The notes under the pieces: generated by a model
What the model saw: only the letters and a program-made list of their open reading frames with translations
Database searches by the model: none
Told to the model about the DNA's origin: nothing
Sequence record: NC_010537.1
DNA length: 41,172 bases
Reading direction: 5' to 3' (one strand)
Translations under genes and position numbers: made by a program
In this document: one piece after another, positions 1,020-13,170 of the stretch
How the letters are laid out: the number at the start of each line of letters is the position of its first letter
How positions within the stretch are numbered: the first letter of the stretch is position 1

Positions 1020-1301
1020 TTATGCACCTATGAACGTTTTTTTCTCCCCGTTTTGAATTATTTCATATCTTCTTCTCAAAAATTGGGACGGTGTAAACAT
1101 TAGTACGCTTCCTTTTTCCGTAACTATCTGAAATCTCGGAACTGTTGGTTTATTTTCCTTTAGCGTTATTATTTCTATGCTTTTTATTTTTTCTTTCCTT
1201 CCGTCTATTATTATGTATTTCTCTTCAGCTTTTTGTAATTCTTCGTATAATTGTTTTGCTAATTCCAATATGTTATCGTATCTCATTACCATATCCCCCA
1301 C
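1020..1301 (-). CDS. Hypothetical protein, up to 93 aa; shares a domain with ORF 1485-1886
   Basis: Motif EKIKSI...IVTEKG...TPSQ matches EKVTEI...IKTEKG...TPSE. Confidence 0.8.
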   Translation of the reverse strand: MGDMVMRYDNILELAKQLYEELQKAEEKYIIIDGRKEKIKSIEIITLKENKPTVPRFQIVTEKGSVLMFTPSQFLRRRYEIIQNGEKKTFIGA

Positions 1302-1480
1302 TTTTTGCTGTTTAATATTTTTATTTTGCCTTCTTCTACCATTTTTGCGTAATCAATAAGCATTTTGGATAATGCTTTGCGTAATTGTTCTTCCGTTGGT
1401 TCTTGTGGTACTTCGTCTACAGCAATATATATCTTTATGTGTAATAATTTGTTTTTTTCGTCGTATTGATATGTTATCAT
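1286..1480 (-). CDS. Hypothetical protein, 64 aa; paralogue of ORF 33379-33573
   Basis: ATG at 1480 with GGTGAG RBS; MITYQYDEKNKLLHIKIY...WGIW vs MISYQYDDKNKILHIKIY...WGLW. Confidence 0.85.
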   Translation of the reverse strand: MITYQYDEKNKLLHIKIYIAVDEVPQEPTEEQLRKALSKMLIDYAKMVEEGKIKILNSKKWGIW

Positions 1481-1484
1481 ACTC

Positions 1485-1886
1485 TCACCATGCATATATC
1501 GGGTATTCAAACAACTCGCTAGGTGTTAGAATATATGTTTTTCCTTTCTCAGTTTTAATAACCAGTTGTCTATCTACTAGTTTTATTTCCGTTACTTTTT
1601 CTTCTCTGTATAGTAGTTCTTTTCTCGTAGATAGGTATCTGTATATTTCACTTGTGGATGTTACAGGGTTAGGCTCCGGATACCTTGCTTTTATTATAAA
1701 TTCCCTCCTTTGGAACCTTTTTGGAGCGTCTATGATTTGCATTCCGTTGTCGAGTCTTGTTATTATTAATCCGTTTTTAGCTACTACTGAGACTACTTCT
1801 TTTTTACCTAGTTTCAGTTTTACGCTTATTTTGAATCCCTTATTTATTAACTCATTTAGTTGGTGTGCCTCCTCGTGTTCATTCAT
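1485..1886 (-). CDS. Hypothetical protein, 133 aa, two degenerate copies of a small beta domain
   Basis: ATG with GGGGGT RBS and upstream TATA; internal similarity and similarity to ORF 1020-1301. Confidence 0.8.
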   Translation of the reverse strand: MNEHEEAHQLNELINKGFKISVKLKLGKKEVVSVVAKNGLIITRLDNGMQIIDAPKRFQRREFIIKARYPEPNPVTSTSEIYRYLSTRKELLYREEKVTEIKLVDRQLVIKTEKGKTYILTPSELFEYPIYAW

Positions 1887-1894
1887 TTTTTTAA

Positions 1895-1916
1895 ACCCCC
1901 CTTTGTAAAGGGGGGT
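1895..1916. promoter_or_regulatory. Perfect inverted repeat ACCCCCCTTT-GT-AAAGGGGGGT overlapping the RBS and likely TSS of ORF 1485-1886
   Basis: 10-bp perfect arms read directly; minus-strand TATA at about 1923-1932. Confidence 0.7.
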
Positions 1917-1934
1917 AATTAAAATATAAAAATT

Positions 1935-2183
1935 TTACTTTTGTAATACGCCTTTTAGTATGTAGGTTCCCGTTTTTGTTATGATTAGCTCTTCTATATG
2001 TATCTTTTCCTTCAGTAGGCTTTCTAATTCCTGCTTTATTTCCGTTTTTATTTCTTTTATTTCTTGTATCTCCTGTAATTTTTGTGATTTTGTCACGTTT
2101 ATTTTGTTCGTCTCCAATGCCGTAAATATATCCTCTATTTTCTTTATGTCTATTTTTCCTTCAACCTCAATCTTTATTCTCAT
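1935..2183 (-). CDS. Hypothetical protein, 82 aa
   Basis: ATG with GAGGTG RBS; overlaps the upstream gene. Confidence 0.75.
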
Positions 2184-2460
2184 ATTCCCACCTCATTATT
2201 ATTTTTCCATCCGTTTTAATTTTTCCTTCCTTAAATTTCATTATTTCCGGTACTTTTTCCTTATATTTGTTTATTATTTCCGTCACTGTTTCATGTAATT
2301 CGGCGTTTTTTGTTATGTCTCTCTTTAGCAATTTGTTTTCTTCAAATGAAATCTCATTTTTTCCTATCAATTTCGCTAACCCCACTAGAAACTTTACGTT
2401 TTTATCATCCGTTGGTGCATCTATTATTGTTAGTATTATTTTTTTTATCATGTTTATCAC
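2167..2460 (-). CDS. Hypothetical protein, 97 aa
   Basis: Overlaps the stop of the Cas4-like gene; typical composition. Confidence 0.75.
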
Positions 2461-3068
2461 CTTATTTTGGAGTATCTACACGATTTTGCTAATTCACAGA
2501 ATTTGCATTCGCCGAATGGTGCTATTAATGTTTTTGTAAAATACGCTACTATTTGTTTATATATCCAATTATCATTTACCGTGTATTGTCCGAAGAACGT
2601 TTGTCCCGTTTCTATATTCCTTATTTCTCCGTCTCTTATTTCGAATTCTGTTATGTCATTACTTCCTAAGTATACTAAAAGTCCGGTTTTTGCTCCTATC
2701 ATATTCATGTAAATTAGTACTTGGTAGATGTGTGGTTCATATGGAAACTGTGGTGGCTTGTGGACGCTTTTGAACTCCACTATTATTCCGTCTTTTGTTA
2801 TTCCGTCCAGTCTGCCTATCAATGTGTATTCGCCGTATTGTTTTTGTACTTCTTTTTCAAACTCAATCTGAAGCTCACCGTATTCTTTCAGCAATTTCTC
2901 TATTCCCTCGTGTATTGCAGTTCCTCGTATTAGCTGAATTGGTGGTATTTCGCTTTGCGGTCTTAGTACGCAATGTAGAAGGTCGGTTACGTAAACTGAC
3001 TTTTCTCCTTTTTGCGGGTGTTGTTCCTGCATTTTTTTGAATGCCTTCAATATTTCTTCCTTTATCAT
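2457..3068 (-). CDS. cas4: Cas4-like (RecB/PD-(D/E)xK) exonuclease with a 4-Cys Fe-S cluster, homologous to rudivirus gp19
   Basis: TDLLHC, GTAIHE, GRLDG, EFKS and QVLIYM motifs; C-terminal [10 protein letters not shown]. Confidence 0.9.
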
Positions 3069-3328
3069 TTCTTTTCACCTTTTATGTTTTTGAATCCTTT
3101 TTCTTCTAATTTTGCTATTATATTTTCCATTTCTTCCGCTTCTTTTTCCAGTCTCTTTTCTAGTTCTTTTACTTCTTTTTCGACTTCTTCCAATTTCTTC
3201 AAGTCATTTTCGTCATTTATTGTAAAGTATTCTGTCCTGCTCAGTTTTACGTTCTTAGTTTTGACTTTTATTATGAAGATTGCGTTTATTATTTCATTGT
3301 CTATCTCATAATATTTCTTTATCGTCAT
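3065..3328 (-). CDS. Hypothetical protein, 87 aa, C-terminal coiled coil
   Basis: Lies between the helicase and nuclease genes, with an ATGA overlap at the nuclease start. Confidence 0.75.
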
Positions 3329-3340
3329 CTTTTCTCACCT

Positions 3341-5149
3341 TTATCTACAAATTACTTTTAACATTTTTTCGCCTATTATTTTCTTTGCGGTTTCTTTTTG
3401 TGAGCATAATTCCGTTTTATTATGGATTCCGTTTCTCATCAGTTCTACTGCTCTTTTTCTTCCGATTCCCGGTAGTTGGACTAACGCTAATGCTTGTGCC
3501 GGAACGCCGTATCTTATCTCTAAGAATAACATCCTTAGTTTGTCTGCTAGCTCTTTTCTTCCGAGTGCTTTAGTAATTCTGTAGACACCGTATGTTTGCC
3601 AAGACAGTGTCTGAATCAATTTGTTCAAATCGTTGAACGTCATGTTCCTTGTCGTCTTAAGAATGATTTTTTCATCAACTCCTTTTATCCATGAGTCAAA
3701 GATAGTATATACGTTTTCGCCTTTAGAAGCGTTTAGCACATTTTCGTTGTTTAATATTGCGTTTACTACCTCATCTTCTGTTACTTTATCTCTTTCTAAT
3801 ACGTCGTGATAGGCGATAGCGTCTTTAACGTCAAAGTACGATTCTGCTACAGCCCTTCCGTAAGGTGTCGTAAAGTAGCCTGTGCTGTCTTGCCCTATTA
3901 GTCTAGCGTCATGTAGTAGGTCTATTTTTTGTTTAACTAGGATTTCCGGCATTCCTTTGAACGAAATGGTGTGGTGTATTGCTTCCATTATTTCGCCGGG
4001 TTTTATGTAAACATATTTCGATATTAGTGCTAGTAAAAAGTCCTCGAGTTGGTGATGTCCTACTATTTCGCCGTATTCTGAATTAAAATACGTCTTCATT
4101 AGTCTTTGTGCTTGTTTTGTGTCTGTTGCTTCAATTACGCAAAGTCCTTCTTCATCGTATCCTGGTCTACCTGCTCTTCCACAGATTTGATCGAATTCGA
4201 TTGGCGTTATTTGCTTCCATCCGATAAACCTGCCGTAATCGATAATCGGTAATTTCAAATCATCAAATACTACTGCATAGAATGGGAAATTGACTCCTTG
4301 GCTTAACGCAGTAGTTGATATTATAATGTTATATTTCCCTTGTCTTGTCTCCTCCAGAAGCCTTAGTTTTGTATCTGGACTTAACCCGGCGTGGAAAAAC
4401 GCTACTTTTCCGGGAAATCTTTTATCGTAAATTAGGTATAGTTCTTCTGCTTTTTTTCTGGTTGATGTGAATATCATTACAACTTTGTTTTTTCTCACCA
4501 TTTTCTTTATGAAGTCCTCTTTTAATTCTATTTTATCACCGTCTTCGAAAATTAGCATGTTTCCTATTTTTATTGCTTTGTATAACGGGATGGGTCTCTC
4601 ATCTGTTTTTATTATTTCCGCATCAGTTATTTCAGCAATTTTGTTAATATCTGGAATTGTTGCACTCATCATAACTAGTCTAATTCCTTCATTCATTGCG
4701 TATGCTATTAAATTCTCTATCGCTCTGCCTCTTTCCTTATCGCCTATGTTATGTATTTCATCGATTATTAATGTCTCGATTCTATCAGCCCATCCATAGT
4801 GTCTTCTAAATACCGCATCAGCCTTTTCGTAAGTAGTGAAAATTACTCTTTCTGATAGGTTTTCGGGGTCTTCTTCATAGACTTCTGACGTTAGAGCTAT
4901 TGAATCGGCATATCCGTTCACTAGAGGTGCTACTTTGTTGTGGAAATCATCATTTAATTGTAGTGCCAAGGCACGTAATGGTACTGTGTACATTACTCTA
5001 GCTTTTGTCTCCATTGCCATTAGCATTGCTAGAAATGACTTTCCCGTTCCAGTAGGTGCTGATATTAGTAAGTTTTTGTCCGTCATTATGAATTCGTTTA
5101 AAGCTTTCTTTTGGAATTCATTGAGGTTTAACGTGATTATCACCTCCAT
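3341..5149 (-). CDS. SF2 Ski2/Hel308(Hjm)-like helicase, 602 aa
   Basis: APTGTGKS, DEIH, MSAT, FHAGL, TTALSQGVNFP and QICGRAGRPG motifs; C-terminal HhH LPGIGRKRA. Confidence 0.95.
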   Translation of the reverse strand: MEVIITLNLNEFQKKALNEFIMTDKNLLISAPTGTGKSFLAMLMAMETKARVMYTVPLRALALQLNDDFHNKVAPLVNGYADSIALTSEVYEEDPENLSERVIFTTYEKADAVFRRHYGWADRIETLIIDEIHNIGDKERGRAIENLIAYAMNEGIRLVMMSATIPDINKIAEITDAEIIKTDERPIPLYKAIKIGNMLIFEDGDKIELKEDFIKKMVRKNKVVMIFTSTRKKAEELYLIYDKRFPGKVAFFHAGLSPDTKLRLLEETRQGKYNIIISTTALSQGVNFPFYAVVFDDLKLPIIDYGRFIGWKQITPIEFDQICGRAGRPGYDEEGLCVIEATDTKQAQRLMKTYFNSEYGEIVGHHQLEDFLLALISKYVYIKPGEIMEAIHHTISFKGMPEILVKQKIDLLHDARLIGQDSTGYFTTPYGRAVAESYFDVKDAIAYHDVLERDKVTEDEVVNAILNNENVLNASKGENVYTIFDSWIKGVDEKIILKTTRNMTFNDLNKLIQTLSWQTYGVYRITKALGRKELADKLRMLFLEIRYGVPAQALALVQLPGIGRKRAVELMRNGIHNKTELCSQKETAKKIIGEKMLKVICR

Positions 5150-6001: not shown

Positions 6002-6574
6002 TTATTGGGTTTGTATTTTTCCTGCTTTTACTAAAGCTTCATACTGTATCTTTAATGCTTCTAGTTGTGATGGGTGTATCAGCACAATCATCGGCTGTTT
6101 GTAGTCTGACTGTTGATATGCTACAGCTACAATTACCGCTCCTGATTTCAATTTTGGTATTACAGACCTCATTAGGCTATAATAAACGCCTTGTGACGTC
6201 GAAAATAAATAGACTTCTTTTCTATGTTTGTTTACTTCTTTAATTAAATCAATAGGAATTGTTTGGCTGTCTGATATCGATTTTATAAGTTTTTGTTCTA
6301 AGTTGTTGTCATCAATAACCCACCCGTCTATATAGCTAACTTGGGCGGGNGTGTTACTGTTTTTTAAGATGACATCCCTAATTTCTACTTTTCTAATTAT
6401 TAACAGTCTCCATATGTACTTTGTTAGATTTTCCCTTTGAAACGGTAATGTTAATTCATCCGATTTTGCTTCTTCTACTAATTCAACTTTTGTTGTTACT
6501 AATTCTTCTTCTTGTTCTTGTTCTTCTTCTTGTTCTTTCAATTCATCTTTAATGCTTTTTTCTTTATTCACCAT
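6002..6574 (-). CDS. Hypothetical protein, 190 aa, acidic N-terminal tail; possible OB-fold
   Basis: AGGTGA RBS; poly-E/Q N-terminus; contains an ambiguous base N at 6350. Confidence 0.8.
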   Translation of the reverse strand: MVNKEKSIKDELKEQEEEQEQEEELVTTKVELVEEAKSDELTLPFQRENLTKYIWRLLIIRKVEIRDVILKNSNXPAQVSYIDGWVIDDNNLEQKLIKSISDSQTIPIDLIKEVNKHRKEVYLFSTSQGVYYSLMRSVIPKLKSGAVIVAVAYQQSDYKQPMIVLIHPSQLEALKIQYEALVKAGKIQTQ

Positions 6575-6717: not shown

Positions 6718-6749
6718 GTTGTCACTACTTAGAAATGTGTTAGCATTTA

Positions 6750-6764
6750 TTTATAAATCTTTTT
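6750..6764 (-). promoter_or_regulatory. BRE+TATA promoter (AAAAAGATTTATAAA) for the 49aa-190aa-SSB operon
   Basis: Variant of the repeated AAAAGATTTATA motif. Confidence 0.65.
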
Positions 6765-6775
6765 GTTCAATAGAC

Positions 6776-6792
6776 AAGAAAGATTTATATAC
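6776..6792 (+). promoter_or_regulatory. BRE+TATA promoter (AAGAAAGATTTATATAC) for ORF 6822-7094
   Basis: Same motif family, divergent from the 6750-6764 copy. Confidence 0.65.
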
Positions 6793-6821
6793 ATTAATAA
6801 TGCATATTAGTGTGATGGGTT

Positions 6822-7094
6822 ATGAGTGTAGATGCATGTGAAAGTATACGAAAACAGATAGAAGAGTTGGCTATGACAGAAGGATATGCATATGAATTAT
6901 TATTCCAGTTAGTAAAAAGATTCAAGGCAGTATATAAAGAATATAATGAGGGCGAAAGGACGTTGAGAGGTATATATCCTGTAGCTAATTCAAGTAAGTA
7001 TTTAGCGATAGTGTATAAGCCTTTTGATGTCTCTATAAGAACATTATGTGATTCTGATGTAGAGAAGTGCAAGAGTTTTATTTTTTCAAGTTAA
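6822..7094 (+). CDS. Hypothetical protein, 90 aa (candidate early/anti-defence gene)
   Basis: Own promoter and downstream T-run terminator. Confidence 0.75.
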   Translation: MSVDACESIRKQIEELAMTEGYAYELLFQLVKRFKAVYKEYNEGERTLRGIYPVANSSKYLAIVYKPFDVSIRTLCDSDVEKCKSFIFSS

Positions 7095-7229
7095 TTATTT
7101 TTTTATGTCATATTTTTCTCATTTTAGGTAAATTATTTCTATTTATCTATATAAGTCGATTGAAATTTAAGATGAGTAGTAATATTATGATAATCATGAA
7201 AAAAATAGGGCATAAAAAAATGATTTGAT

Positions 7230-7484
7230 TTAAATGTTTGTAGTGACGATACAAGTTTTATTATTAGATGTGAAAGACTTGATGTATTTGAATAGAAGCA
7301 ATTTATTGTTGTAGCTGAACACTATTTCTTTTTTGTACTCGAATTTATCTTCTTCTTTTTTTTCTGTTATTTTTTTAATTTCTGCTATTTTTTCTAGTTC
7401 ATTACATTCTTCATTGTTCAATTCATATCTTAGATAAATTCCCTTTGCTAATAGTTCTAACATCGCTTCTATGTATGGATTCAT
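7230..7484 (-). CDS. Hypothetical protein, 84 aa (weak AcrID1/AFV1-ORF99-like pattern)
   Basis: Leaderless ATG about 26 nt from the centre of the 20-bp promoter TATA; family similarity is weak and from memory. Confidence 0.7.
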   Translation of the reverse strand: MNPYIEAMLELLAKGIYLRYELNNEECNELEKIAEIKKITEKKEEDKFEYKKEIVFSYNNKLLLFKYIKSFTSNNKTCIVTTNI

Positions 7485-7504
7485 ATTTATTTATTGTTCT
7501 TCTA

Positions 7505-7524
7505 TTTATATAAATCTTTTTCTC
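7505..7524 (-). promoter_or_regulatory. Identical 20-bp promoter GAGAAAAAGATTTATATAAA, copy 1
   Basis: Exact match with 7888-7907 and 8335-8354. Confidence 0.85.
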
Positions 7525-7596
7525 GATTAATAGAACCATAAATGAAAGAAGTAGGAATAATATCAGAAAACTGAAAAAAATAGAGTAAAAAAAATA

Positions 7597-7866
7597 TTAA
7601 CTTGAGTGGAGTATAGAAGATAATAGAAGTAGAAGTACTTGTTTATCGTGTAGAAGTTTTAAGTTTATGTCTAGTAAATTTATTTTGTATTTCAATGTAT
7701 ATTTTATCATTAACGCTTTAAATTCACATTCATTGAAGCAAGTTGAAATGTATCTATTGATGTAAAACACTATTGTATTTTTATCTATTTCTGAAAATTT
7801 CGAAATTCTTTTTCCTAATGTTTCAATTTTCTCAAGCTCTTTTAACATATCATTCATATTCTTCAC
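7597..7866 (-). CDS. Hypothetical protein, up to 89 aa (GTG 7866 or ATG 7857)
   Basis: Directly downstream of promoter copy 2. Confidence 0.65.
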   Translation of the reverse strand: MKNMNDMLKELEKIETLGKRISKFSEIDKNTIVFYINRYISTCFNECEFKALMIKYTLKYKINLLDINLKLLHDKQVLLLLLSSILHSS

Positions 7867-7887
7867 TACTTACATTTTCGTTTTTCA

Positions 7888-7907
7888 TTTATATAAATCT
7901 TTTTCTC
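7888..7907 (-). promoter_or_regulatory. Identical 20-bp promoter, copy 2
   Basis: Exact repeat. Confidence 0.85.
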
Positions 7908-8001
7908 AGTTTAGAGAACGATTTTTTGTTTTGTGAACTTTTGAAAATGGATAGAAATATTATGAGAAAAGTGAGAAAAATTGTTGATAAAAAAAACGGG
8001 T

Positions 8002-8298
8002 TTAGAAATAAGCTAAGTAGTAATTTTCGATATCACAGATGTTTTCGTTTCTTCTTATTCTCTCTATTTCATTAACGTTTACATTTAGATGCATTTTTAG
8101 ATACAATACAGCGAAATCTATATCTTTATGTAGATACTTTTTTTCATCGCTGCAGAATAATATATTTTCTTCAATTATTGCATATCTCTTTTCAATATTT
8201 ATGAATATATGAATGTTTTCTAAACAAATCTTTTTGTTACATTTATTTATTAATTCATTCAATTCAAATTGTTTTATCTTGTTTTGCATACTTTTCAT
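8002..8298 (-). CDS. Hypothetical protein, 98 aa
   Basis: Downstream of promoter copy 3. Confidence 0.7.
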   Translation of the reverse strand: MKSMQNKIKQFELNELINKCNKKICLENIHIFINIEKRYAIIEENILFCSDEKKYLHKDIDFAVLYLKMHLNVNVNEIERIRRNENICDIENYYLAYF

Positions 8299-8334
8299 TA
8301 CTTTTATTTACGTTCTCGATTTGTGTTTCTGCAT

Positions 8335-8354
8335 TTTATATAAATCTTTTTCTC
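8335..8354 (-). promoter_or_regulatory. Identical 20-bp promoter, copy 3
   Basis: Exact repeat. Confidence 0.85.
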
Positions 8355-9219
8355 TAGAAAGAGAGCTTAGTATAATTCCTTTTATAATATAATGAATTAT
8401 ACTTTTTATCGTTCTCTTTTTAGATAACGTAAAAACGTTCTCTTTATAAAGGCATATTTTTTTCATAATTAGAAATTTTATCAGTTACAATAAATTTTTT
8501 GTCTGAAAACCAATTTATTACCTTAATTTAAGGTAACAACAAAGATTTCAAACAAAAAATCTAATGTTTCAGATATTATTTCGCTGATTAAATAAAATAT
8601 ATGGACGTGCATTATTCAATTATCATGAAGAAGATTTAAATTGAATTTTTCTCAAAAGCTGCAGTAAAAAAATTCAATTTTTATACACTGAAATAGTGTC
8701 AGTGTAATACTCCAAATTGGAAAAATTTCAGCTCAAAGATTTTTCGGATTGAAGCTATATTCTTCAGAAAAAATTTTTTCTTTAAAAACGTTTTTACGTC
8801 GTTCTTTTTCATGGATTTTAGGGAAAAGAAGGGGAAAAGTTGAAAATTAAGGGTTAAAAAAGTTTTCTAGTAAAATAACGTGTGGGGTTTAAAAAGATTT
8901 TTACAAAGGGGGTAAGAAAAATTGTACTTTCTTTCAATTTAACTAAGCTGATTCCAGGTCACTTAGTTTGAAATTTTTCACAACTAGGTGAATATTCTCA
9001 ATTGGTATTGAGTTGAAAATCTCAATTGAACCGTTTCTTATTAATTGAACGGAAACAAAGAGTTTATTATCTTTTATCTCAACGTTCAGAATTTTATATT
9101 CTTTCTTTATGAATAAAACATTATTGCGTATTACTATTTAAAGCGAAACTTTAGATATTACCAAATTGACTGAAATATTATCCAAAATTTGAGAAAAATA
9201 TCTAATAAAAAAATAATGA
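8355..9219. other. Long AT-rich ORF-free region (about 865 bp); candidate origin or regulatory region
   Basis: No ORF of 60 aa or more in the track; inverted repeats TACACTGA-N7-TCAGTGTA (8684-8706) and AACTAAG-N14-CTTAGTT (8941-8968). Confidence 0.5.
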
Positions 9220-10905
9220 TTAACGAATTTGAATTATTCCGGAATATTCGTTAATTACAAATTTTTCTCTTTTCATTTTCTGTTTGGCAAATATTTCGTG
9301 AGCGTAATTGATATCGAGAACATAGCCTTTTTCTTTTTGTTTCGCTGGACGCATTACTCTACCAATTCTTTGAATTAATTTGATTCTTGATTTTCCTTGA
9401 GATAACAATACTACTAGTCTTAAATTCGGAATATCAAGTCCTTCATCTGCTAGGGATGTGGAAATCAACACTTGGAGTTTTCCATTTTTCAAAGCTTCTA
9501 TTTTTTGTATTCTTTCTTCTAGATTTGTCTTACTCGACACCCAATCTGCATTAATTCCGGATTCATCGAACATTTTGGATAATAATTCAGCGTGTCTAAT
9601 TCTCCTAACAATAACAAGAGCTGGATATTTGTTCAACGAAATTATTTTTTGAATAATTTGTTTATTCGTATAAGGAGAGTTTTCAAACATTCTCAGTAGT
9701 GCTGAGTAAAATTTTGCAAAAGGTGAATCAGTATACATTAATTCTATGTTTTTTATTTTCTTTTCTATTTTCTCTGAAAGTTTTGGTTCAAATGAAATAT
9801 ATTCAATCGGTACTAAATATCTATTTTGCACTAATTCTGTATAATCTATTGTAAATGATATTTTTCCTAACAATCCCATAATTTCTAGTTCACGCCCGTC
9901 TTCTCTTAATGGAGTAGCAGAAAGTCCTAACCTTATTGAATTTGGTGAATCTAGAAGTAACGATTTTACAATATTAGCGGGTGTATGATGGGCCTCATCT
10001 ACTATTACTAAATCAGCGTTACTAATCAGTTCTTTTAGTTTCTCATTTTTATTTTGTTTTTTCTGAGAGTAATAGTAAGATATCGATAATGCTATTAAAT
10101 CACTTTTTTCTCCTTTTTGTAATTCATTTACTTCTCCTGAAACTAACACAAACGGCAAATCTTCTTTTTTAGCAAAATTCTGAAATTGTTTTAATAATGT
10201 GGTTGAATTTACAGCATATATTATTTTTGCATTACTTTTATTCTTTAGCATTTCCAATGCCGAAAGTATTGCAATCACAGATTTTCCAGACCCTGTAGGG
10301 GCTTTTATAACTCCATTACCTGTAATGTTAATATCATTTATCCATGCTTTAATACTATTAATTTGGTAACTTCTCATTTCAAAGTTCTTTAGTTGAATTT
10401 CGTGGAATTGTAAATTAGTAAACGGCTTCACTTTAATATTAGTAATTGTTGATAATTTCCAATATAATCCTCTAAAAGTAGCAAAATTATTTTGTCTTTG
10501 CCAGGCTAGTAGCACTGGAGTCTCAATGTATTGACCTTGAATATGGTCAAATGTTTTGATTTTATATGTTAATAGTTCTTTATATTTTGATAGGTCATCA
10601 TAAACTATTAGATAATTTCCTTTTATTTCGCCATAGACATAATTATTTTTATCTTTGATATAGTCACTTAATACATCATAAACAATATCTCCTAGATAAT
10701 CTTTTAATCTATCAACAGTTTCCCTTATCATTTCTTTATCAGTTATCGCCAATTTTCTTTCATTAAGATACCATTTTTTGTTTTGAGGGTCAAAATTAGC
10801 AATTATTTTTACTAATGATATATAGTCTTGAAACTCATCTCTTGATAAAAATCTACTTGGACTAGGTAAATAGATTTTATCCAAATTTTGAGATTTATCA
10901 TTCAT
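9220..10905 (-). CDS. SF2 XPB/Rad25-like helicase, 561 aa
   Basis: APTGSGKS, DEAHH, GLSATPLREDG, TSLADEGLDIP and QRIGRVMR motifs; N-terminal ANFDPQNKKW (HARP-like). Confidence 0.95.
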   Translation of the reverse strand: MNDKSQNLDKIYLPSPSRFLSRDEFQDYISLVKIIANFDPQNKKWYLNERKLAITDKEMIRETVDRLKDYLGDIVYDVLSDYIKDKNNYVYGEIKGNYLIVYDDLSKYKELLTYKIKTFDHIQGQYIETPVLLAWQRQNNFATFRGLYWKLSTITNIKVKPFTNLQFHEIQLKNFEMRSYQINSIKAWINDINITGNGVIKAPTGSGKSVIAILSALEMLKNKSNAKIIYAVNSTTLLKQFQNFAKKEDLPFVLVSGEVNELQKGEKSDLIALSISYYYSQKKQNKNEKLKELISNADLVIVDEAHHTPANIVKSLLLDSPNSIRLGLSATPLREDGRELEIMGLLGKISFTIDYTELVQNRYLVPIEYISFEPKLSEKIEKKIKNIELMYTDSPFAKFYSALLRMFENSPYTNKQIIQKIISLNKYPALVIVRRIRHAELLSKMFDESGINADWVSSKTNLEERIQKIEALKNGKLQVLISTSLADEGLDIPNLRLVVLLSQGKSRIKLIQRIGRVMRPAKQKEKGYVLDINYAHEIFAKQKMKREKFVINEYSGIIQIR

Positions 10906-10948: not shown

Positions 10949-12010
10949 TTAGAATTCGAATATCTTTGTCTCTTTGTCAAGATTGTATAGAAATTTATAG
11001 ACAGACTTTATAGGATATTTCAATGTAATTGCAGGCAGTCTCATGCACCATAATGTATTTTTATAATCTACTCCACACAAATATGATTCGTTGTCAGGTT
11101 CAATAAACTTTAACAGAACCTGGTTTACGTTATCGTAATCATAGTCTTGAAGTACTATAATTCTGAAATCAGGGAAACGCCCGCCTGTTAGTCTGCGATA
11201 ATCAGGCTCTATTAAATTCGTGAACGTGAAGATTGGAAATTCGTTGAATTTGTCTAAGATTCTCAGCATTTTCGATAATGCTTTTTTCTGTAAGTCATCA
11301 AACGTTTGTATATAACTTAGATGCTCTTTTATATCATAATCATGGGGATTTCTCAGTTTCATTATCCCTTTCTTTATTAACATTCTGAAGAATTGATATT
11401 CAATTTTTATATTCCTCATCTTCACTTTAGCAAAATACGGCATTCTGTGTTCTAAATTCCCAAACCTTTCTTTCAATTCCTTATATGGAATCCCGTTAAT
11501 TTTATGTAGATATAAGATATCGCCGTATATCGGATAGCCGTATTCCGATTCCGGTAACTCTTTTTCTTCTAAATCCGGTAACGTTAGATAATATCTTTTT
11601 ACTTTTCTTATTATTTCAAGTTCAATGTTTGGTTTATTTCTCCTTATTACAACGCCGAAATTCTTGAAATTGAAATAAGCTTTTCCTTTGAAAAACAATA
11701 TGTAATAAATTCTTAGTTTTCCTTTAAAACCGGCTGTAAAATTTTCTAATCTTCTCCTTTCTGCAATTGTTTGGAATTTGCTAATATTAAACCTTACAAT
11801 AAATTTCCTATTGCATTTTTTCTCAATCTCTATTTTATTGTGGTATAAATACATATAAATGATATTTTCGTTTAATTTGTGTAGGATATATTCGTAATCT
11901 TTCAATCTATAGTTTTTCTTAAAAACATATTCCACTTTTTCACTAAATTTATCGAAATTTATTATTATGTTCATAAGATATTTGATTTTTTCATCTTCTT
12001 TCCTGAACAT
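10949..12010 (-). CDS. Hypothetical protein, 353 aa
   Basis: Long ORF; shares a 16-bp upstream/start sequence with the XPB-like helicase gene. Confidence 0.85.
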   Translation of the reverse strand: MFRKEDEKIKYLMNIIINFDKFSEKVEYVFKKNYRLKDYEYILHKLNENIIYMYLYHNKIEIEKKCNRKFIVRFNISKFQTIAERRRLENFTAGFKGKLRIYYILFFKGKAYFNFKNFGVVIRRNKPNIELEIIRKVKRYYLTLPDLEEKELPESEYGYPIYGDILYLHKINGIPYKELKERFGNLEHRMPYFAKVKMRNIKIEYQFFRMLIKKGIMKLRNPHDYDIKEHLSYIQTFDDLQKKALSKMLRILDKFNEFPIFTFTNLIEPDYRRLTGGRFPDFRIIVLQDYDYDNVNQVLLKFIEPDNESYLCGVDYKNTLWCMRLPAITLKYPIKSVYKFLYNLDKETKIFEF

Positions 12011-12049
12011 GTTTTCTCATTATAATGTATAAGCAAAAGTTTATAAGTT

Positions 12050-12061
12050 TGTGATATCACA
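12050..12061. promoter_or_regulatory. Perfect 12-bp palindrome TGTGATATCACA between divergent genes (candidate operator)
   Basis: Lies between TATA (12040-12047) and ATG 12073. Confidence 0.55.
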
Positions 12062-12072
12062 TTTTTAGATGA

Positions 12073-12801: not shown

Positions 12802-13170
12802 ATGCTATATGTCCTTAATTCCGCAACCCTTCCCTTGAAGCCGGGGAAGGAGTACATGATAAGAGCAAGGGAATTAACGATAGAAGAGGCTAAGGAGTTA
12901 TTAAGTACTGAACCTTACGTATCGGCAGTTGGACACGAAGCTACAGCTGTAGCTTTAAGTAATATATTCGGCGTAACAATACCATACAACAGAACTCAGA
13001 TATTCCTAGACAAAGGCGATAAATTGCTTTCTATTATATTGAAGAAGAGACTAGAAGAGGGTAAGGTTATAAAGACCGTTGAGGAGCTTCAGCAGGTAGG
13101 TTATTCGATATGGCTTTTTGAAGTAGAGCCTGATGGACAGAAAGAATTAGGTAACCCCGGGATTGTTTAG
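12802..13170 (+). CDS. acrIII-1: AcrIII-1 anti-CRISPR ring nuclease (DUF1874; AFV3-109/STIV B116 family)
   Basis: MLYVLNS start, SAVGHEATA (catalytic GH), YNRTQI and KKRLEEG motifs. Confidence 0.92.
   Translation: MLYVLNSATLPLKPGKEYMIRARELTIEEAKELLSTEPYVSAVGHEATAVALSNIFGVTIPYNRTQIFLDKGDKLLSIILKKRLEEGKVIKTVEELQQVGYSIWLFEVEPDGQKELGNPGIV

Follow-up and report, generated by a model that had tools for sequence, protein, structure and literature searches.

A putative early-promoter regulon of single-gene units, possibly directed against host defences, in the hypervariable slot of Acidianus filamentous virus 9

The small genes gp16 to gp19 of Acidianus filamentous virus 9 (AFV9; Betalipothrixvirus uzonense, host Acidianus uzoniensis) probably form an early-promoter regulon of monocistronic, terminator-bounded accessory genes, which may well act against host defences and whose turnover appears to be helped by the expression modules that they share. 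The window analysed here, 41,172 bp in length, is the complete AFV9 genome (100% identical to EU545650/NC_010537), and its record annotates 73 genes, with gp16–gp20 all labelled "hypothetical protein." In the mechanism that we propose, a repeated 20-mer would be the core of an early promoter class specific to AFV9, and each of gp16–gp19 would be a separate transcription unit consisting of a promoter module (~30–56 nt; GYTCT-N7-GAGAAAAAGATTTATATAAA for gp17–gp19), a short cargo open reading frame (ORF), and a ~55-nt bipartite oligo-T terminator. Strong transcription of these units by the host RNA polymerase, beginning upon genome entry, would give a burst of small accessory proteins whose likeliest job would be to neutralise host defences or to serve host takeover in another way, and a virus-encoded regulator would later shut the units off. 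The units occupy the one hypervariable slot of betalipothrixvirus genomes, where whole units would be gained, lost, and replaced as the cargo turns over, with the conserved promoter and terminator modules serving as frequent junctions. We hold the anatomy of promoters and cassettes with high confidence; an anti-defence function of gp16–gp19 is put forward more tentatively, as a proposal that could well be right.

The 20-mer GAGAAAAAGATTTATATAAA occurs exactly three times in the genome, always on the minus strand (7505–7524, 7888–7907, and 8335–8354), as an earlier note made from the sequence alone had recorded, against 0.05 matches expected from shuffles, 0/100 of which reached four matches. 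Its end lies 20 nt upstream of the annotated ATG of gp17, 30 nt upstream of that of gp18 (which also has an in-frame GTG at 7866), and 36 nt upstream of that of gp19. It consists of ten purines (GAGAAAAAGA) followed by TTTATATA; the all-purine part would be a transcription factor B (TFB) recognition element (BRE), and TTTATATA the TATA-binding protein (TBP) site, a TATA box of the TTTAWATA type. Bhoobalan-Chitty et al. (2024; PMC11065993) have described this combination of a TTTAWATA TATA box and a purine-rich BRE as the core of strong early promoters in Sulfolobales viruses. An 11-mer core, AAAGATTTATA, is present exactly six times in the 41 kb, all within the 4.2 kb between 6752 and 10939: in the promoters of gp15 and gp16, in the three exact 20-mers, and in an inverted copy near the helicase start. 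The TATA box of gp16 (6784–6791; AGAAAGA precedes TTTATATA) is centred ~34 nt 5' of the ATG at 6822. In Sulfolobales promoters the centre of the TATA box lies ~26 nt 5' of the transcription start, and the TATA-to-ATG spacing of the motif copies matches this usual geometry; by this spacing the gp17 transcript would probably have no leader, and those of gp18 and gp19 short ones. The sequence AGTGA precedes the ATG of gp18, likewise that of gp15 and those in metagenomic relatives. An exact search for the 20-mer in IMG/VR returned AFV9 only, plus two chance in-frame matches in bacterial phage contigs.

Close variants of the motif had been proposed to drive gp16 and an "SSB operon" (gp13–gp15); both promoters do contain exact AAAGATTTATA cores, but for the label itself, which refers to single-stranded DNA-binding protein (SSB), searches of gp13–gp15 in Pfam, NCBIfam, and PDB gave no support. 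The related promoter said to drive a leaderless acrIII-1 was recovered: the gp25 promoter, GAGAAAAATTTATATA, stands at leaderless spacing, and gp25 (12802–13170) matches DUF1874/STIV_B116 (Pfam PF08960, E 1.4e-30, 105.9 bits vs a cut-off of 26), which would make it a member of the AcrIII-1/DUF1874 ring-nuclease family. In the sixth, inverted copy of the motif, the palindromic TTTATATAAA doubles as TATA box for the helicase gene gp21, whose ATG is at 10905 on the minus strand. Since this palindrome lies at promoter distance from the helicase ATG, the copy may be either a bidirectional promoter, yielding antisense RNA against the gp22 3' end, or the helicase promoter, with a BRE-like run downstream of the TATA box. 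The helicase promoter of the related virus AFV8 has a similar look to that of AFV9 gp21.

The repetition extends beyond the 20-mer on both sides of the genes. Repeat analysis delimits a 56-nt 5' module, whose copies (7484–7539, 7867–7922, and 8314–8369) are 70–75% identical, and the extended 28-nt pattern GYTCT-N7-GAGAA-N3-GATTTATA has three occurrences with none expected. The element GTTCT-N7-GAGAA is also found 5' of three variable genes in the closest relative, the 45.7-kb IMG/VR contig L013 (helicase 72% identical; found by a helicase-based scan). We infer that GYTCT-N7-GAGAA is likely a candidate operator that overlaps the BRE and would serve a viral repressor, and the same kind of operator-over-promoter argument has been made for the virus SMV2 (PMC11065993). 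GAGAACG, considered as an operator half-site, was rejected as unspecific with 11 occurrences genome-wide and was replaced by the position-fixed GYTCT-N7-GAGAA. Downstream of gp17, gp18, and gp19 lies a 55-nt 3' module, which recurs after the helicase gene and, inverted, after gp16. In the alignment it runs from the stop codon through ATTTTTTTAT-N5-ATTTTT(C/T)TCA-N-TTTT...ATAATATT, with a bipartite core of two oligo-T runs (TTTTTTTAT-N5-ATTTTTCTCA); oligo-T runs are the archaeal type of termination signal. The gaps between the gp16–gp19 units measure 112–144 nt, and the coding sequences between the modules have no similarity at the DNA level beyond the motif.

The region is very AT-rich, as had been noted, with a GC content of 24.7% in 6750–8354 against 34.6% genome-wide; GC content falls to its minimum for the genome here, the 1.6-kb segments poorest in GC beginning at 7001–7201. 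One could read this minimum, the ~480-bp conserved non-coding stretch that adjoins it, and the inverted motif copy 2.6 kb away as signs that the repeats are iteron-like or DNA-unwinding elements of a replication or packaging site, not promoters, and that the ORFs are incidental. We find this barely credible, given that the motif fits the BRE/TATA consensus and stands at promoter distance from a start codon every time, that the same motif is found 5' of genes in ~14 related contigs, with a conserved AGTGA-N4-6-ATG leader, and that the ORFs themselves are neither of chance length nor, for gp17 and gp18, devoid of conservation at the protein level. Five ATG-initiated ORFs of ≥84 amino acids (aa) are observed in the region, against 0.02 expected from Markov simulations of ~25% GC DNA; because these lengths are far above chance and relatives encode proteins homologous to gp17 and gp18, the gp16–gp19 ORFs are real genes. 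The annotated gp20 is probably not a gene: it overlaps the gp19 promoter (copy 3), has no early motif of its own, encodes a very basic protein with an isoelectric point (pI) of 10.3, and is not matched by any gene in the related islands.

The four proteins had been described as orphans, and single-protein searches leave that impression. A word-index search of large protein databases matched gp16, gp17, and gp18 to themselves only; for gp19, a full HMMER scan found itself and a spurious repeat protein, and tblastn against phage records found itself only. For gp17 and gp18, and probably for gp19, this impression is wrong, since homologues emerged when the promoter pattern was used to collect relatives. 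Scanning metagenomes for GAGAARAAGATTTATATA gave 120 matches, most of them chance matches in AT-rich DNA, of which the ~14 AT-rich contigs mentioned above were kept on the basis of flanking elements and tblastn. Full-length homologues of gp17 (23–31% identity; alignment A8) are encoded in L032, L055, L072, and L088, and homologues of gp18 (27–47% identity; alignment A7; tblastn E down to 8e-12) in L055, L072, L077, L088, L109, and L129. The gp19 protein is a probable distant member of a family of 95–103 aa present in L058, L072, L077, L104, and L118 (hhalign 62%, E 7.6e-5, 83 columns), with which it has a C-terminal C-x-I-x-N-Y-Y in common. Only gp16 found no relative in any search, the metagenomic contigs included. 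An AlphaFold2 (AF2) single-sequence model of gp16 has an alpha-alpha-beta3-alpha arrangement at moderate confidence (pLDDT 72, pTM 0.62), with no significant PDB neighbour (best E 0.56) and only itself as a BFVD match; the corresponding model of gp19 (pLDDT 42) was unusable. None of gp16–gp19 belongs to a Pfam family or has a relative in PDB.

The regular spacing of the promoter copies (383 and 447 bp), the common 5' and 3' modules, the similar protein lengths (84–98 aa), and the K/E/I/N/L-rich composition raise the question of whether a single unit was duplicated in tandem, its coding parts diverging and its promoters being kept identical by selection or gene conversion; a true paralogous family (SIFV0015, SIFV0018, and SIFV0020) does occupy the same slot in the related virus SIFV. 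For AFV9 we consider such a paralogue array highly improbable. Its proteins have no significant pairwise similarity in blastp, and profile–profile comparison of the gp17, gp18, and gp19-like families gave probabilities below 3% throughout (hhalign 0.5%, 0.1%, and 2.9%), so that no homology among the cargo was detected; moreover, each family is separately conserved in relatives, in varying combinations and orders.

The island occupies the slot between the conserved gp15–gp13 unit and the helicase gene, the gene mix of which differs in every relative (SIFV, SIFV2, AFV3, AFV6, AFV7, AFV8, L013, L077, and L129), and each related virus has its own flavour of near-identical promoters. In SIFV2 the slot (from the ORF49 homologue to the helicase) contains gp12–gp17, among them the anti-CRISPR (Acr) AcrIA, gp15, followed by a ~470-bp non-coding stretch and a conserved 67-aa gene; in SIFV it contains two more genes, and in AFV3, AFV6, AFV7, and AFV8 there are 8–10 genes, partly differing among these viruses. 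No protein match to AFV9 gp16–gp19 was found in the slots of these six viruses. The contigs L129, L077, and L059, with helicases 70–71% identical to that of AFV9 and with gp13–gp15 and gp22–gp25 present, are syntenic with AFV9, and clustering of ORFs across the islands gives ~15 small-gene families in mosaic combinations. The earlier note had regarded a gene order conserved across relatives as evidence against its proposal; comparison of the cassette content with AFV3, AFV6, AFV7, AFV8, and SIFV shows that gene order is not conserved. In four AFV9-like contigs (L013, L077, L109, and L129) a Dam-type N6-adenine methyltransferase (PF05869, E 1e-8) is divergent from the gp15 homologue, exactly at the position taken in AFV9 by the unrelated gp16, and on this family match the island appears to include at least one classic counter-restriction function. 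In L059 (Ga0080003_1005950, 1064–3437) the helicase gene is only ~545 bp from the gp15 homologue, in opposite orientation and with one 101-aa gene between them; this short gap and flipped helicase indicate that the island was rearranged or relocated there.

That these genes may be directed against host defences has been predicted before. Bhoobalan-Chitty et al. (2024, Nat Commun 15:3699; PMC11065993) proposed that the anti-defence genes of archaeal viruses are single genes that have in common a regulatory sequence, specific to the virus, in which a strong early promoter is embedded, and AFV9 was analysed explicitly: in their Supplementary Data 1, gp16 is ADG.40, gp17 is ADG.38, gp18 is ADG.37, and gp19 is ADG.39, while gp15 appears as ADG.60, labelled "ADa," followed by gp14 and gp13 as low-probability pADG. 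The proposal of four candidate new Acrs or anti-defence proteins, which the earlier note reached independently of any database, is therefore a re-derivation of a published prediction. The sequence features by which that study selected genes are present here: gp16–gp19 are single genes outside operons, each with its own promoter and its own terminator module; the promoters have the TTTAWATA box and purine-rich BRE; and the regulatory sequence is shared, with 20/20 nt in three genes, the 28-nt pattern three times, the 56-nt module, and the 11-mer also at gp15 and gp16. The core claim on gp16–gp19 is thus already known, and our analysis extends it by the terminator and operator modules, the homologues from metagenomes, the catalogue of mosaic gene families, and the evidence on junctions described below. 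As far as the available text of that study goes, it treats the same genes but describes no AFV9 experiments, terminator module, GYTCT-N7 element, or metagenomic homologues, and the word "recombination" is absent from its main text. It lists 74/116 families as singletons, and in the text available ADG.37–ADG.40 each appear with their AFV9 member only, whereas gp17, gp18, and probably gp19 were found here to have relatives.

Support for an anti-defence role comes from the SIFV2 gp14–gp17 cluster, which lies in the same slot, with the ORF49 homologue on one side and the conserved 67-aa gene plus the helicase on the other, and which likewise consists of one plus-strand gene followed by three minus-strand genes of 90–99 aa, each with its own near-identical promoter, ahead of the same conserved non-coding stretch. 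One of its members, gp15, was shown to inhibit subtype I-A CRISPR-Cas (PMC11065993). The two clusters differ in promoter flavour (AGAGAAATCTTTAAATA in SIFV2), their proteins are unrelated, and an activity is known for SIFV2 gp15 where that of the AFV9 genes is predicted. Membership of the AcrIA family was not detected for the AFV9 proteins: gp17, gp18, gp19, and their families gave at most 3% in hhalign against the family of SIFV2 gp15 (alignment A1, including SIFV paralogues of the gp15, gp18, and gp20 type), and blastp gave no match. The terminal early genes of SIRV2 (acrID1 and acrIIIB1, with Aca8) are also small single genes whose strong promoters are nearly identical and whose expression sets in directly upon infection (PMC11065993), and by analogy with them gp16–gp19 may be transcribed immediately after infection as well. 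Unlike the SIRV2 genes, which lie at both genome termini, those of AFV9 occupy one internal slot near the left end; no homologue of Aca8, AcrID1, or AcrIIIB1 is listed for AFV9 in the available data of that study, and the candidate operator of AFV9 is GYTCT-N7-GAGAA.

Several points weigh against this interpretation. The words "early" and "strong" are borrowed by analogy from SIRV2. In the searches made, no sequence, profile, or fold similarity linked gp16–gp19 to a known Acr or to any known protein, and the AFV9 proteins are near-neutral or basic, in contrast to SIFV2 gp15 with its pI of 4.9. Of the six SIFV2 anti-defence genes predicted and put through a preliminary I-A screen, gp15 alone gave a signal (PMC11065993), which makes a promoter match on its own a weak predictor of any particular activity. 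Homologues of gp18 occur in six related contigs, and this protein is more conserved than a typical fast-turnover Acr, which hints at a general early role. Such observations would also fit early accessory genes with tasks other than anti-defence, such as host takeover, regulation of viral or host transcription or of the cell cycle, or superinfection exclusion, the promoter then marking timing only; the same study flags some motif-associated proteins as regulators ("ADa," e.g. gp15), and the gp18 family is present in most AFV9-like contigs. We nonetheless regard such a wholly different role as unlikely: the syntenic SIFV2 cluster holds a proven AcrIA (PMC11065993), a Dam-type methyltransferase, a classic anti-restriction function, sits in the same slot of relatives, and the extreme turnover of cargo among close relatives is typical of arms-race genes. 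The proposal of four anti-defence candidates is thus partly sustained by the shared, putatively strong promoter in front of single genes, the hypervariable island, and the synteny with SIFV2, but it was already in print and finds no backing in homology to Acr proteins.

Junctions between units can be followed in several relatives, and the suggestion that identical promoters act as points of recombination is moderately supported by them. The alignment of AFV9 with L013 breaks off at 6766, where the gp15 promoter has its edge, and resumes at 8472, with only the terminator modules alignable in between. In AFV6 a promoter core lies on either side of the gp18 (ORF113) unit, the two being identical over 21 nt; this unit is missing from AFV3, which has a single hybrid promoter there, the upstream part of which is 85% identical to the sequence upstream of AFV6 gp18 and 46% to that upstream of AFV6 gp17, and the gene behind it is the orthologue of AFV6 gp17 (51% aa identity). 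This arrangement would be the pattern expected of recombination between promoter repeats. The contigs L055 and L072 have in common a 172-bp intergenic module (terminator, promoter, and 5' untranslated region) at 87% identity, with unrelated genes from the ATG on. L072 and L118 differ by a 741-bp indel of two units with its left breakpoint between BRE and TATA box, and the deletion is marked in L072 (~283–308) by a promoter remnant, GTTCTTTAAAGAGAGAAGAAGGTTT, comprising operator and BRE but no TATA box and fused to the next intergenic region. Two considerations count against the idea that promoters guide the exchange. The right breakpoint of the same indel shares a TTT microhomology only, so not all events were promoter-to-promoter recombination. 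Moreover, survivorship could give the same picture of junctions, because only intergenic junctions leave working genes and may merely be the sole ones that leave viable viruses. The evidence consists of observed cases from few genomes, and from these sequences we conclude with moderate confidence that promoter and terminator modules are frequent unit junctions.

Sharing of modules seems to extend beyond the family. A 44-bp part of the gp19 terminator (7952–7995) is 91% identical to positions 2501–2544 of the rudivirus ARV3 (L008, MN876842), downstream of its gp05, and the ARV3 promoters AGATAGAAAGATTTAAATAG resemble the AFV9 gp16 promoter, GAAAGATTTA being common to the promoters of both viruses. 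The host of ARV3 is Acidianus brierleyi, and the families of AFV9 and ARV3 share expression modules, not cargo proteins. The terminator match and the GAAAGATTTA promoters are the grounds for an extended version of the turnover proposal, in which promoter and terminator modules would be portable homology arms through which co-infecting Ligamenvirales swap expression-ready units without an integrase, possibly across families, the array being a dedicated scaffold for anti-defence turnover and not mere co-regulation; we regard this extension as doubtful. By analogy only, the island recalls integron cassette arrays, which also consist of short, unrelated, single-gene units bounded by repeats, with content varying among relatives. 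Unlike the promoterless cassettes of an integron, however, each AFV9 unit has its own promoter, the repeats are BRE/TATA promoters and oligo-T terminators instead of attC sites, the junctions look homologous or based on microhomology, and the annotation shows no integrase within the island or beside it; an array of the integron type was rejected for these reasons.

Table 1. Positions of island genes, promoter copies, and terminator modules in AFV9, and of the Dam-type methyltransferases in related contigs
Feature	Position	Strand	Remarks
gp16 (ORF90), 90 aa	6822–7094	+	NC_010537 annotation
gp17 (ORF84), 84 aa	7230–7484	-	NC_010537 annotation
gp18 (ORF86), 86 aa	7597–7857	-	NC_010537 annotation
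gp19 (ORF98), 98 aa, 4 Cys	8002–8298	-	NC_010537 annotation
gp20 (ORF52)	8308–8466	-	NC_010537 annotation; gene status doubtful
Promoter of gp15-gp14-gp13 unit, variant AACAAAAAGATTTATAAATA	6748–6767	-	Exact AAAGATTTATA core; back to back with gp16 promoter
Promoter of gp16, variant ACAAGAAAGATTTATATACA	6774–6793	+	Exact AAAGATTTATA core
Promoter copy 1 (gp17)	7505–7536	-	Exact 20-mer plus upstream GTTCT-N7
Promoter copy 2 (gp18)	7888–7919	-	Exact 20-mer plus GTTCT-N7
Promoter copy 3 (gp19)	8335–8366	-	Exact 20-mer plus GCTCT-N7
Sixth motif copy, AAGAAAAAGATTTATATAAA	10924–10943	+	1 mismatch, inverted; between gp22 and helicase gene
gp16 3' terminator module, ATTATTTTTTTATGTCATATTTTTCTCA...	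7094–7139	+	Inverted copy; alignment A5
gp17 3' terminator module	7166–7220	-	Two T7 runs; repeat family D1
gp18 3' terminator module	7541–7595	-	Repeat family D1
gp19 3' terminator module	7941–7995	-	Repeat analysis and alignment
Helicase 3' terminator module	9159–9213		Repeat analysis
Dam-type methyltransferase, L013	11717–12172		PF05869
Dam-type methyltransferase, L077	1230–1640		PF05869
Dam-type methyltransferase, L109	176–586		PF05869
Dam-type methyltransferase, L129	7259–7669		PF05869

The surroundings of the island have features of their own. The ~480 bp at 8472–8960 contain no ORF and are 73–76% identical to the equivalent stretch in SIFV, SIFV2, and L013, and TTTTTAAACCCCAC and GACGTAAAANCGTTTTTAAAGAAAAAATTTTTTC are among the blocks that do not vary. 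Rfam gave no match here or anywhere else in the window, and no RNA structure is supported, because RNAalifold gave -5.65 kcal/mol; the stretch could be a protein-binding, regulatory, or replication element. It is followed on the minus strand (8964–9137) by an unannotated homologue of the conserved lipothrixviral 67-aa protein SIFV0021/SIFV2 gp18 (64% identity over 58 aa, E 4e-20), which is an open frame without a canonical start, because ATA replaces the ATG of SIFV and again the start of the 58-aa form in L013. This could be a pseudogene, a case of a non-canonical start, or a sequencing error. An ambiguous base (N) at 6350 inside gp14, giving an X in the protein, shows that some positions were left unresolved in the deposited sequence, a point of relevance to the absent start codon at 9137.

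On the other side of the helicase gene, gp22 (353 aa, 10949–12072, minus strand) lies between it and a divergent promoter containing TGTGATATCACA (12050–12061), which is similar to the promoter of the SIFV2 helicase gene. The large neighbour of the helicase gene in SIFV and SIFV2 (336–343 aa), compared with gp22 by position only, is on the opposite strand; the difference suggests a local rearrangement in AFV9-like viruses, and L077 and L129 have the AFV9 arrangement. The TGTGATATCACA palindrome was considered as the mark of a second regulon and rejected, as it is not enriched.

With the anti-defence prediction for gp16–gp19 already in the literature, its value now lies in being tested, and the present analysis offers several ways into the biology of these viruses. 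The genes gp17 and gp18 are conserved, real genes, whose alignments are now usable for structure prediction, and the candidate operator GYTCT-N7-GAGAA would be a handle for finding the regulator. The catalogue of ~15 island families from AFV9-like metagenomic viruses reveals the slot as a mosaic, and the junctions seen at the sequence level suggest that its units are exchanged at shared expression modules. If gp16–gp19 do act against host defences, they would represent up to four new families of inhibitors of Sulfolobales defence systems, a field in which few inhibitors have been characterised so far.

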